A stretch of DNA of 64,000 nt, taken from positions 620,001-684,000 of the forward strand of contig JAKMXF010000221.1 in NCBI GenBank assembly GCA_024704765.1, given 5' to 3'. Positions 23,139-28,209 of this stretch are shown piece after piece. Position 1 is the stretch's first letter; every line of letters starts with the position of its first letter. The DNA comes from Oopsacas minuta. Taxonomy: Eukaryota; Animalia; Porifera. The translations under genes and the position numbers were made by a program. Below the pieces are notes generated by a model. That model ran no database searches. It saw nothing but the letters and a program-made list of their open reading frames with translations, and was not told where the DNA came from.

Positions 23139-24554
23139 TTAAAAATCATAATTCTCTGGTTTTTGATTGTAGAGATGATAACAGAATTTTTGATTTTCTG
23201 GTTCTGACTTCTGACTGAACTCTGGTACAATGCTTGAATTGTCTACACGATTTAGGACACCAGTTGCTGCAAATTGATATTCCTGTAGTGAAGAAGTTGG
23301 GACATATGCAGAAATCAATTGCGGGTTTTCACAGTGAACAATTGGACCACTGTGTTTAAAACAGGCAGCTTCCATCAAATGGTCAGCGAAATAATTATGA
23401 CCTCTTCTCAGATAGAAATCTTGTCCAGCTGCAATATCGAATATAGGATTATTTATTCGCTCTGATGTATCCATTGCATTTAAATAGGATGGTATAGATA
23501 CATTTTGATCATCATGCTTTGAATATCCTTGAGAGGATACTGTATCTGGAGATATTCCTTGAAAATATATTTTATTTGGAGATATTCCTTGGAAGGATAC
23601 TGTATTTGGTGATATTCCTTGGAAGGATACTGTATTTGGTGATATTCCTTGAAAGGATACTGTATTTGGAGTAATTCGTCGTTGTTTTACCTGTTGGGCA
23701 AGTACAGACGGTTTTTGATCTAATAGAGTGGGGAGTATCTGATATTTATGATTGTGTGCTAATGATATGGGAATCATTGCTTGTTGGTGTGCTGTTGGTA
23801 TATGAGTCATTGCTCGTGTATGTGCTGTTGGTATATGAGTCATTGCTTGTGTATGTGCTGTTGGTATATGAGTCATTGCTTGTGTATGTGCTGTTGGTAT
23901 ATGAGTCATTGCTTGTGTATGTGCTGATGGTATAGGAATCATTGCTTGTGTATGTGCTGATGGTATAGGAATCATTGCTTGTTGGTGTGCTGATGGTATA
24001 TGAACTACTGCTGACTGTTGATGTGTTTGTGTTAACGGAGTACTGGATAGTCCTTTTTGTTGTGCAGCAAGCTGAAAGGGTTGAATAAAATTGTTCTGAG
24101 TACATGTGGATACTACTTTAGGTAAGATGGCGGGTTCCTGAAGCTGATAGAGAGAGATTGGTGCTGGTGGAATAATAACTCTTTGTTCTATGAAGGATTG
24201 TTGAGGAGGTAAAATAACATTATGAGTTGACGATTTAGGGATAACTACGTTCTGCTTGGGAAAAGCTCCCTGATGAGTACATGAAGGTTGTGATGACGGT
24301 GTGTTTATAGGAATAATGACATTTTGTTGTACACATGTCTCAGCTGGATTGTTGTTTAGTTCTTTTTGAGAAAATAGGGCAAATACCGGTGGAGCAATGT
24401 TTACCTCTTGTTTGAGATTTGTCTCGTGAAGAGGTAGCCCTTCTTGGAGGTGGGAAGCTAATTGTGGAATCGTATATACGGAAGGGATTGCCACTTCTTG
24501 TTCGATATGTGTAGTCAAGATGTTGGATCGGGGAATTGCAGCATTTGAATCAAG

Positions 24555-24610
<56 letters not shown>

Positions 24611-27338
24611 GAGGGGGTTGGAGTTGATATGATTTCAACTCTTGTGTCGTATTAGCAGGCAGTTTATCTTGTCGATGTGAAGCAAAATCTGTTGGAATAA
24701 CGATAGCTGATTCCGATTGTGGATATTCGTATCTTGGTATTGCATGTTGAACGTTTTCGGGTATATAGGGGCTGATAGGGATATTAGTTGTATTGTATGC
24801 AACTAAGTCATTCAGTGGGTAACTATCTGGACCTATAGGAATTTGTGGTTGTATTACTTGATCCATTGGAATTGTTGATTGATTTTGGAAACTTGGAATT
24901 TCGGGATGATGGAGATGATCTTGGATACTAAAATTTGAGATTTCCAATGGATGGCTATTAGGGATAGATCCTGTGGTATATTCTAATGCAGGTGCATTTG
25001 ATGAACAGTTATTCGTTGGTGGATACTCCCCTTTCTCTCCTAATACATGGGCAATTACTATTATGAGTTTACCTTTTTCTTCCAATTCAATTTCTGGTGA
25101 GTCGTAAAATGCTGTGCTAGACCGAAGCCATACCCAACCAGTTTTAGATTTGCTCAAATACTCACAAGTTTGTGCTTCTCCTTTCTCACACAAAACTGCA
25201 CATGCTGGTGTCATGGTATTTATGAAATCTTGATGTATAAAACTCAAAGCTGATTGTCCTTGGACTTCGTCCTGTTCAAAGCCAACGTATCTATGTGCTC
25301 GGTGATCTTGATAGAGAATTTCTAGCGTGTCAATACTAAGAAGCGTGACAAATATATGATCAGTCAAGGGTCGATCCATCCACTCGTCAACAAAAGCAAG
25401 ACTACATAGTATATGTACCAGTCCATCACTAGCATCGATGGTCCCCTGTAAATTGTATACCCGGTAGCCAGAGGTCATGGTAATTATATTTCGTGATCTC
25501 CTGGTGGGAAAACGCAACCTGCAATAGTGTAAGAAATTCTTTAATTTCTTGCTTCTAAAATTTTCCAAAGTTTCACTCAGTTGAATCAGATCATCATGGT
25601 AAGCTAGTTTGCTGAAAGGTTGTCCAATCAATTTGTAGCTTAGCGAGCCGATGAATTTGTGTGAATTTGTACTGAGGTAACATATCGTCAAATGCTGGTC
25701 CAATACTATATGGAAATTCCCGAGGAGATCCAGGAAGCTCTTGTCCGATTCTTGTGACGCATTAAGCACTGACTATAGAGAGAATTAAAATAATAAAATT
25801 ATTCTAGTACATAATGGCGATATTATTAGTGCATATTTCCAGTAATTCACGTAACGAAAGGCTTTCATGATGTATGAAAATGTAGATACTTTAAAAGTTC
25901 TATTTTTGGATAAAAGACATTTTCAGAATGGAGATAGTCATGTAATGACTACAACCTTTGATTAACTCAATATCCATAAATATTAATAAAATAAACACAA
26001 TGAATAAATAATAAATTGAAGTATAATATTGTTGGTAAAGTCTGTACGAGTTAAAGTCATTAAATAAATAAAATTGGAACCAATTGAATAATTAACACAA
26101 TTATTTATTATAATCTGTGTTGCTAGCTTGCGCTGTGCGGTTTGAGCAGAAATGAATGTCCATTTTCTTCAATCAACTTAGAAAAATCAAAACAGTTTTT
26201 ATAGAAAATGTGTAATTTTTATTCAAATAATTTTACCAAAATATACTTTAATCATAATTCAGTTCGTTCTCTCTAATTGTCCATTTGTTTATACACAAAA
26301 ATTTTGTAATCGTTATTCACCTCGAATTCTCTAATCGTGCGCATTCTCTAATTGTCTGCTTGCCAACTGGTAGACATTAGTGAAGACTCAGAGTATTTGT
26401 GAAATTTCTGGCAATATTTTTAGAAAATTTCAAATGAACGAATCCTGCCAAAAATATGAAAAAGTATTTTAGAATTTATTGATGGCAATTGTGACACAAT
26501 TTACAGCTGTCTTTCTTGAATTTATTACTTATAACAAATGATTATTTTAAAATCGCGATTAATCAGCTGTATAATAATATTCGATAATTTAATTATAAAT
26601 GCTCTCCCCATGGTATCAAAAATAATTGTCAGTCATTGCTAAAATTATTAAACGCTCTACTCACGGGAATTTATTCACTAAAATGCTATTTTTTGCTTTG
26701 TTATTCAGTTTCATAATTATTCGTTAGTTGTGTGAATTCGTTCCAATTCATTAGTTGCAATTACTTTGTTCTTTACTTAATTCTGGGAACTTATTTGGAA
26801 CTTTTGAGTTTGACATCAATTAGCTTATAATAATAATGACGATGATAATAATAATAATAATAATAGTAATAATAATAATAATAATAATAATAGTAGTATA
26901 CAACAAATCTTTACGATTCAAGAACCTTTCTACGAAACTATTAGTCAACCACCTGACGAAGAACCCGATAATACACAAGATGTCACAATCAATACCACAA
27001 TTACAACAGATTTAGAATATACTAGTTCAGAAAATTCAAATGATCATCTCTAAACCAAACATGATTACATAGCCTGTCAGCAATCAACACTTTCAGAAAC
27101 CACCATTGCTCAAATCCACTTTATATAGTAACTCCCATAAATAATATTAGTAAGCCCAGATACGATTTATCATCTTTTGTTACTCAGAAATCTAGAATGT
27201 TCCTTCAAACCTTAGACTAGCAGCAATCAGTTATATTTAGTACTATAGTTGTGTTTGTACTGATGAGCTGGATAAATAGCCGGCGAAACAAATTATGTTA
27301 TTGTCTACTACTATTAAATCTACATATACTCTTTAGTT

Positions 27339-27376
<38 letters not shown>

Positions 27377-28209
27377 AGAATTTAAGGACGCTTCCAGATT
27401 AAGTATATTCCCTCTAAAAATACAAAAACAGAACAAAAATATTATTTAAAATTTACAAATACATTTTAGTGAGTAATTTGGTCTTAGAAGTGTTTCTAGC
27501 TTTGGAATTATTTGAATTTATACGAGGGGAATTCCAAAAGTTTTGTCGTTTATATATTTGCATAATCGATATTACTTGTTGTATAGCCAAAGACAAAATA
27601 ATACACTTTACTATCTGTCATTTGTCCCCTTAAATATGTTTATGGATGAAAGGATACGAAAATTACAATAAAATAAACAGTAAACTGTCTAGAAATAAGA
27701 AATTACACAAAGATTAGCTTTGAAAATGTAAAATATCTTCGAGGCAATTACAGAGTGTTACAATCTGCCATTAATATTTTGGGAAATGTTATAATCTAAT
27801 TAAAATTTGTTTATGATATCAAATGAAAATTAATCATAATTTCACACCTTTTAAATTTATTAATATATTGTCACCTGTTATCGTTTCGAGTTTTTACCAA
27901 ACAATTATAACATATTTTAATGATTTTGGCGGGGAAAGCATTTCTAAAATTCTATAGAAATGATTTCCTAATCTTTGAAAGCGAAAACGAGAATTATTAA
28001 CAAATAATTACCTGAAAAAATCCTTTGCCTTCAGCTCCCCTCAAAGAATTGTCTTTATTGTTATTTTTCGCAGATTCCATCGTTGAAATTGAGAGACGTA
28101 GAATAGATTGAGAATCCAAAGTAGATTTGATATTATCTGGGAAAGGTAGAAGGTTGCATAACTCCGATAATTTCTGACGGAACTTATCGTGTCTTTTCAC
28201 TTTAGACAT
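23139..28209 (-). CDS. class I bHLH-PAS transcription factor; bHLH exon 28209-28012 spliced to exon 25772-23139
   Basis: bHLH KRHDKFRQKLSELCNLLPFP..LDSQSILRLSIS; phase-0 donor CAG|GTAATT and acceptor TATAG|TCA across a 2.2-kb intron; PAS-A (LLGNFHIVL..ICYLS) and PAS-B (GFEQDEVQGQSALSFIH..WVWLRS); Q/P-rich tail. An upstream exon cannot be excluded. Confidence 0.85.
23520..24611 (-). repeat. coding tandem repeats in the bHLH-PAS tail: polyQ (~19 CAA codons, 24555-24611), 33-bp/11-aa repeats (QAMTHIPTAHT-like, about 8) and 30-bp/10-aa repeats (PNTVSFQGIS-like, about 5)
   Basis: Visible in the translation and in the DNA. Confidence 0.9.
26828..27374 (+). mobile_element. possible 5'-truncated Penelope-like element or retrozyme remnant bracketed by (AAT)n
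   Basis: (AAT)n tracts at ~26828-26892 and ~27342-27374 enclose a stop-terminated ORF tail and a hammerhead ribozyme. No RT or GIY-YIG sequence is present, so the class is inferred. Confidence 0.4.
27245..27314 (+). ncRNA. type I hammerhead ribozyme
   Basis: Core CTGATGA (27260-66); stem II GCTGG/CCGGC with loop ATAAATAG; GAAA (27285-88); stem III ACAA/TTGT; GTC cleavage triplet (27303-05); stem I GTA/TAC plus ATAGT/ACTAT across a 7x1 internal loop. Confidence 0.85.

Follow-up and report, generated by a model that had tools for sequence, protein, structure and literature searches.

A complete hammerhead ribozyme motif lies in a probable intron of a transcription-factor-like gene of the glass sponge Oopsacas minuta, on the strand opposite to the gene. 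How did it come to be there, and does it belong to the gene or to something that inserted into it? The window analyzed here is a stretch of 64,000 nucleotides (GenBank assembly GCA_024704765.1, contig JAKMXF010000221.1, positions 620,001 to 684,000 of the forward strand), and window coordinates below are counted from its first letter. The motif is very probably the hammerhead of the 3' untranslated region (3'UTR), equivalent to a pseudo-long terminal repeat (pseudo-LTR), of an endonuclease-bearing (EN+) Penelope-like retrotransposon (PLE) of this sponge. We accept it as a genuine hammerhead because it lies in the sense-strand 3'UTR of a PLE, a place where hammerheads are known, and not on the strength of motif statistics. 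A hammerhead-bearing PLE is a known class of element, hammerheads having been described in PLEs since 2014.

The hammerhead motif and its repeated unit

A first-pass annotation of the window, made from the sequence alone, had placed a complete type I hammerhead on the plus strand, and direct reading confirms all of its coordinates and base assignments, as follows.

27245-27314, plus strand: type I hammerhead ribozyme motif (direct reading; sub-threshold HH9 match of 16.6 bits; fold energies; our own covariance model)
27260-27266, plus strand: hammerhead core CUGAUGA (direct reading)
27267-27271 and 27280-27284, plus strand: helix II, GCUGG with CCGGC, 5 bp, closed by the 8-nt loop II
27285-27288, plus strand: GAAA
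27288-27291 and 27301-27304, plus strand: helix III, ACAA with UUGU, 4 bp, closed by a 9-nt loop
27257-27259 and 27306-27308, plus strand: core-proximal part of helix I, GUA with UAC, 3 bp
27245-27249 and 27310-27314, plus strand: distal part of helix I, AUAGU with ACUAU, beyond a 7x1 internal loop
27305-27306, plus strand: predicted self-cleavage site, after C17 (27305, last base of the GUC triplet) by hammerhead numbering, 35 nt before the 3' end of the repeated unit described below

The conserved core is complete, comprising CUGAUGA (27260-27266), GAA (27285-27287), the pair A27288-U27304 (A15.1-U16.1), and C27305 (H17), and the three-helix topology is present: loops cap helices II and III, and helix I is open. 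The closing pair of helix II is G10.1-C11.1, which matches canonical hammerheads, as does C15.2-G16.2 in helix III. Helix II of the window copy contains one U-G wobble. Since 14 other copies read CCAGC where the window copy reads CCGGC, helix II of the family is entirely Watson-Crick, and the wobble reflects an A-to-G change private to the window copy. In four diverged copies, the pairing holds in 92.5% of cells. The first-pass annotation further proposed that the internal loop of helix I contacts loop II, as in natural fast hammerheads. Both loops are there on direct reading (7x1 in helix I, 8 nt in helix II), but the proximal part of helix I is just 3 bp long and its distal part is disrupted without compensation in older copies; with a disfavored fold and no covariance model reaching its threshold (see below), the proposed contact is left unsupported.

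The motif is part of a dispersed repeat. A genome-wide search for copies, which had been suggested as a check, finds 25 or more matches to positions 27200-27340 in the sponge's own 61.5 Mb assembly, 15 of them at 97 to 99% identity. They belong to a 447-bp unit with at least 17 full copies, 15 of which are 96 to 98% identical to the window copy. Two unit copies, G000:C111:424869 (L018) and G000:C310:1177246 (L039), are interrupted by runs of N, so that these copy counts are lower bounds. Around the hammerhead, the unit and its flanks are laid out in the window as follows.

26827-26895, plus strand: imperfect (AAT)n microsatellite bordering the insertion at its 5' end; in full-length copies, the final repeats correspond to the poly-Asn run of open reading frame (ORF) 2
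26874-27053, plus strand: C-terminal coding remnant of ORF2 (residues 621-679, open frame), with the stop codon at 27051-27053 (95% identity over 26874-27050, no stops)
26896-27342, plus strand: 447-bp 3'-terminal unit of the PLE, equivalent to a pseudo-LTR (copy search; the same unit flanks a 3.5-kb body on C24 and C41)
27054-27340, plus strand: retroelement 3'UTR with the hammerhead
27341-27375, plus strand: (AAT)n microsatellite bordering the insertion at its 3' end (tail or target)

What the unit belongs to is seen on contigs C24 and C41, where it is joined directly, without a microsatellite, to a 3.5-kb body with two ORFs on the same strand (450 and 679 amino acids). The order on C24 is unit, ORF1, ORF2, (AAT)5, unit, (AAT)n, unit, with hammerhead-to-hammerhead distances of 3951 and 507 nt, and the order on C41 is unit, ORF1, ORF2. 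The same hammerhead motif is found in all three units of C24 and in the upstream unit of C41. The full element thus measures about 3.95 kb from hammerhead to hammerhead and consists of a short leader, ORF1, ORF2, an internal (AAT)n that codes for poly-Asn, the last 59 codons of ORF2, and the 3'UTR with the hammerhead; across the (AAT)n, the full-length ORF2 reads YYFNNNNNSSIQQ. Residues 621 to 679 of ORF2, its last 59, are encoded within every unit copy. With the ORF2 tail inside the unit and the body adjoining it, the unit represents the terminal part of ORF2 together with the 3'UTR and the 3' terminus of the retroelement. The first-pass annotation had held that no feature of the ORF track explains the motif. 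This does not stand, as the first ~155 bases of the unit are the last 59 codons of the ORF for reverse transcriptase (RT) and a putative endonuclease, and the hammerhead lies in its 3'UTR; the accompanying suggestion of a ribozyme-bearing retroelement family proved right, the multicopy unit being the 3' end of an RT-bearing element. The window copy itself is 5'-truncated: it starts at the internal (AAT)n and lacks ORF1 and the RT. Its identity to the copies' majority sequence is 97.7%, it keeps every core base of the hammerhead, and the C24 element's own units are 97 to 98% identical to it.

At the tandem junction, the predicted cut would fall about 70 nt upstream of the ORF1 AUG. ORF2 lies in the -1 frame relative to ORF1, its open frame beginning 4 nt before the ORF1 stop, which carries a U-rich AAUUUUUAG. 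ORF1 ends in CCU AAU UUU UAG, followed after ~9 nt by a perfect 8-bp GC-rich hairpin (L046:6560-6640, minus strand). The ORF1/ORF2 junction looks like a programmed -1 frameshift cassette.

The class of the element and its insertion

Which retroelement is this? ORF2 matches the reverse transcriptase family RVT_1 (E = 2e-8). By eye, it contains a DKG motif and subsequent conserved blocks that are invariant among seven relatives, a Cys-rich linker (CxxC in the ORF2 copy, C-x3-4-C-x2-C in the relatives), and an IY...YVGQAG...R...E segment interpretable as a GIY-YIG core. A Cys linker of the same kind occurs in Neptune and Nematis PLEs (PMC8557442). The seven relatives, found by a word-index protein search, are NCBI LOD99_10237 of Oopsacas minuta, which is 100% identical to ORF2, and six proteins at 35 to 49% identity; none of the seven is named as a PLE. 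A profile of the ORF2 relatives gave 595 matches among 1.8 billion representatives, and in three long distant matches, P0115, P0139, and P0144, Pfam places a GIY-YIG domain at the C terminus with a score over its cut-off. Pairwise alignments of ORF2 with P0139 and P0115 cover 413 to 466 RT residues (E = 9e-16 and 1e-13, respectively). In a profile-profile comparison with hhalign, ORF2 and P0139 align over 547 columns (99.6% probability, E = 4e-24), and the alignment spans the Cys linker up to the YVGQ/YIGQ segment, where the Pfam-verified GIY-YIG domain of P0139 starts. Neighbors in the protein atlas carry RVT_1 together with GIY-YIG (PF01541). A sequence search of the PDB with the ORF2 profile found a weak RT match only and no GIY-YIG match.

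Canonical EN+ PLEs are described as having hammerheads universally near the 3' end, partial tandems, and a preference for microsatellites (PMC8557442), with hammerheads carried in their pseudo-LTRs (PMC4209133). The sponge element has an RT with the DKG motif, partial tandems or pseudo-LTRs alongside many truncated copies, a hammerhead near its 3' end, and a bias toward insertion in microsatellites. Together with the probable RT plus GIY-YIG composition, these features fit the published description of EN+ PLEs (PMC8557442, PMC4209133). The microsatellite bias of PLEs has been reported mainly for (TA)n, (CA)n, and (C)n (PMC8557442), and here the repeat is (AAT)n: it lies directly upstream of every young copy and on both flanks of 14 of the 15 young unit copies, and two of them have the PLE body in place of the 3' repeat. 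The 15 young solo units also share one exact start point, at the internal (AAT)n.

How would such an element move? By analogy with the published PLE model (PMC4209133), readthrough transcripts of tandem copies would be cut by each hammerhead after its GUC, releasing unit-length RNA with a 5'-OH and a 2',3'-cyclic phosphate, and the released RNA may act as mRNA or template or may be ligated into circles. Integration would then occur in (AAT)n tracts, microhomology with the internal (AAT)n giving rise to the 5' junction. These last two steps are suggested by the solo units, which begin uniformly at the internal (AAT)n and have (AAT)n on either side. A full-length copy on C41 (L047:2780-2960, minus strand) stops 10 nt past the internal (AAT)n, without a 3' unit, and its ends are the same two (AAT)n-adjacent points as those of the solo units in permuted order, which hints that both junctions may form at (AAT)n.

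The uniform start can also be read in another way. Random 5' truncation would give ragged starts in place of the one exact start of the 15 young copies, solo units stand to full-length elements at ~15 to 2, and one head-to-tail pair with a hammerhead spacing of 507 nt is present. The 447-bp unit with its (AAT)n might then be a free-standing, nonautonomous, retrozyme-like element that derives from the PLE 3' end and uses PLE proteins in trans; it would amplify through a hammerhead-processed RNA of ~507 nt, possibly circular, and its copies would not be simple 5'-truncated PLE insertions. Animal retrozymes have indeed been proposed as derivatives of PLE pseudo-LTRs (bioRxiv 10.64898/2026.07.22.740005; PMC7229834). 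Metazoan non-LTR retrozymes (Cervera & de la Pena 2020, PMC7229834; Li, Clavereau & Pollet 2026 preprint) likewise are short noncoding units with a type I hammerhead and kinship to the PLE pseudo-LTR, and the head-to-tail pair found here could, like them, yield unit-length RNA with ligatable ends. They differ in that the sponge copies are mostly dispersed single units rather than tandem arrays and in that the sponge unit of 447 bp plus microsatellite retains the 3' end of a PLE ORF. Metazoan retrozymes are described as arrays of ~170- to 400-bp repeats (PMC7229834), whereas we found a single two-unit tandem with a period of 507 bp, located at the 3' end of a full element. Moreover, the common start is the internal (AAT)n and the insertions are in (AAT)n, so that microhomology at the 5' junction explains the uniform start without a separate element, and solo units (96 to 98%) and the units of the C24 element (97 to 98%) fall in the same range of identity. 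We therefore regard a retrozyme-like element as unlikely. Slightly less likely still is its most far-reaching form, in which the unit is a self-standing parasite of the sponge PLE with a monomer hammerhead, a ~507-nt circle, and (AAT)n-specific reinsertion; if that were true, ribozyme-bearing circular-RNA retroelements would extend to Porifera and would be linked to microsatellite-homing integration.

Motif statistics and the chance of a look-alike

The assignment of the motif to a PLE hammerhead has a number of results to contend with, which we gather here as the points against it. The first-pass annotation had named the Rfam hammerhead models as a check, and they gave no support: no match appears at gathering thresholds in the whole window, and the best relaxed match, to Hammerhead_HH9, reaches 16.6 bits where the cut-off is 52 (E = 0.15 in 251 nt). 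Genome-wide searches with RF00163 and RF02275 returned nothing above the cut-off, and the motif family is absent from the scored candidates. Thermodynamically, the hammerhead fold is disfavored by ~6 kcal/mol in the window copy (-4.5 versus a minimum free energy [MFE] of -10.5 kcal/mol). The sequence record of the copies gives no significant sign of selection either. Among the 15 young copies, 3 of 70 sites inside the ribozyme and 28 to 33 of 370 outside are variable (p = 0.14 to 0.24). The C332 copy provides the one compensatory pair, C15.2-G16.2 to U-A in helix III, which is equaled in 143 of 500 shuffles, the four diverged copies being too similar for a covariation test. In older copies, the hammerhead core has been lost through deletions. 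On the protein side, Pfam GIY-YIG has no match on ORF2 itself. Finally, in the one PLE studied biochemically, that of Anolis, the hammerhead required the element's protein for its cleavage, and insertion in vitro did not depend on the ribozyme (PMC11167929), which means that the role is unsettled even for a genuine PLE hammerhead.

Other measurements belong beside these. Published PLE hammerheads were likewise detected by relaxed descriptors and not by Rfam-type models (PMC4209133). The MFE z-score of the motif stretch is +0.4, no stabler than shuffled sequences, and in a consensus-like copy, the hammerhead fold reaches -5.2 kcal/mol versus an MFE of -10.8 kcal/mol. One young copy has a C3-to-U change. 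A raw cell count of 4 versus 79, which had suggested constraint, was discarded since it is inflated by shared and indel columns. Our own covariance model R1 gave 23 matches genome-wide, all within this family of PLE units, and found no second family of like architecture. No hammerhead was detected by descriptor or Rfam in the degenerate PLE copies C329, C79, C317, C20, and C81. In the degenerate PLE-rich region of C329 (L053:1913-1969 and 2270-2445), near-perfect palindromes match models of plant and animal microRNA precursors below threshold (for example, MIR1512, 32 bits versus 79); these matches are almost certainly inverted-repeat artifacts.

How often would a motif of this quality arise by chance? 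With a descriptor of at least 5 bp in helix II, 4 bp in helix III, and 3 bp in helix I, a first-order Markov sequence of 20 Mb contained one match. An analytic estimate, which reproduces the simulated counts for looser descriptors, gives ~2 motifs of equal quality per 61.5 Mb genome, both strands included, or ~0.15 when G10.1-C11.1 is required. The motif alone is not above chance expectation. It might accordingly be a chance look-alike that sits in a repeat and was multiplied by transposition, without catalysis, and the sub-threshold covariance-model scores, the disfavored fold, and the nonsignificant constraint and covariation are all in keeping with this. So is the existence of a second repeated CUGAUGA...GAAA core, family B, which has no recognizable helix I or III, indicating that hammerhead-like cores can hitch-hike in repeats. 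What decides for the PLE hammerhead is location. A look-alike would have had to fall by chance in the sense-strand 3'UTR of a PLE, that is, in a target of a few kb among 123 Mb (both strands), or ~1 in 10,000, and this is a known hammerhead site (PMC8557442, PMC4209133). In addition, G10.1-C11.1 and C15.2-G16.2 are canonical, and helix II is perfect in the majority sequence of the copies. A noncatalytic look-alike is, in our judgment, distinctly improbable.

Family B deserves a separate description. It has a CUGAUGA-GUCC...GGAC-GAAAC core with a good helix II in 11 copies (G000:C8:27187-27211 and 10 others). We rejected it as supporting evidence because helices I and III were not found and it adjoins an unrelated abundant repeat: at the locus L064:1380-1680, it abuts the end of a very abundant ~200-bp terminal repeat (462 or more candidate copies, frequently arranged as inverted pairs ~725 bp apart), which looks like a miniature inverted-repeat transposable element or the end of a DNA transposon. 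Two further families resemble type III hammerheads (L060-L069; e.g., G000:C316:78033-78088 and C310:459058-459097). They show a loop-closed helix I (UUGCG...CGCAA) followed by CUGA(C/G)GA, GUCC...GG(A/G)C, and GAAAC and score below threshold with RF00008 (30.3 versus 48.5 bits) and RF00163 (26.5 versus 34 bits).

The host gene and the wider family of PLE hammerheads

The host gene was examined by searching its exons one by one, each separately.

27997-28209, minus strand: upstream exon of the interrupted host gene, containing a bHLH-like segment (bHLH_HIF1A at E = 1.2e-4, short of the Pfam cut-off)
23139-25769, minus strand: downstream exon of the same gene, a large host ORF or exon whose N-terminal region is PAS-like (PAS_11, E = 0.026, weak)

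The motif lies between these two minus-strand exons and hence antisense in an intron of a probable bHLH-PAS gene, in agreement with the first-pass placement in a transcription-factor intron, if the intron itself is taken as probable. The PAS-like exon contains a 20-residue poly-Q run and tandem peptide repeats with AHTQAM(T/I)(H/P)IP(T/S) and GISPNTVSFQ units. Judged from its orientation in the sequence, the window copy would cut a plus-strand transcript only, and its antisense position is the one observation that speaks for a ribozyme in the service of the host, processing an antisense transcript of the bHLH-PAS gene and thereby regulating it. We give this almost no credence: the same sequence occurs at 16 or more other unrelated loci with unrelated flanks, the insertion is recent, as judged by its 97.7% identity to the majority sequence, and its helix II bears the private A-to-G change. 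The window copy has no evident role in the host gene.

With the motif read as a PLE hammerhead, its closest comparison is with the hammerheads of PLE pseudo-LTRs (Cervera & de la Pena 2014, PMC4209133; Craig et al. 2021, PMC8557442). As there, a sense-strand type I hammerhead lies near the 3' end of an element with an RT and, here probably, a GIY-YIG domain and is found in both flanking repeats of full copies as well as in numerous truncated solo copies; the pair G10.1-C11.1 is kept, the short helix I is ill-defined, and standard models miss the motif. The host differs, being here a hexactinellid sponge, and our literature search found no paper on sponge hammerheads, which is a weak negative. 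The architecture differs too. The typical minimal hammerheads of metazoan PLEs (PMC4209133) lack helix III or have a palindromic one of 1 to 2 bp, are thought to act as dimers, and combine a helix II of 6 to 8 bp with an additional base that separates positions 9 and 10.1. The Oopsacas hammerhead has no such base; its helix III is 4 bp long and ends in a nonpalindromic 9-nt loop, and its helix II is 5 bp long. In these respects, it seems nearer to the monomer-type hammerheads reported from PLEs of plants, fungi, and protists.

Poseidon of Anolis carolinensis (PAc; Frangieh et al. 2024, PMC11167929) is also an EN+ PLE with the order pseudo-LTR, ORF, pseudo-LTR and a hammerhead in the repeat. 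The PAc hammerhead overlaps the start of the ORF, while that of Oopsacas is ~70 nt upstream of the ORF1 AUG in tandem, and PAc has one ORF where the Oopsacas element has two, with ORF2 shifted to the -1 frame. Rfam Hammerhead_HH9 (RF02275) and Hammerhead_1 (RF00163) share the catalytic core and the three-helix topology with an open helix I. HH9 is an intronic, ultraconserved amniote ribozyme on the sense strand of its host gene, in contrast to the Oopsacas motif, which is part of a transposon and antisense to the host gene.

For the annotation of this genome, a dispersed 447-bp repeat is explained, and the intronic copy is a transposon fragment and not a host ribozyme. The role of PLE hammerheads is unsettled in the field (PMC8557442, PMC11167929), and with its real helix III, the sponge hammerhead would be a convenient candidate for asking whether a PLE hammerhead cleaves alone and what the cleavage does. 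Hammerhead-bearing PLEs would thus reach the glass sponges, among the earliest-branching animal lineages, an occurrence that fits an ancient association between this ribozyme and PLEs.

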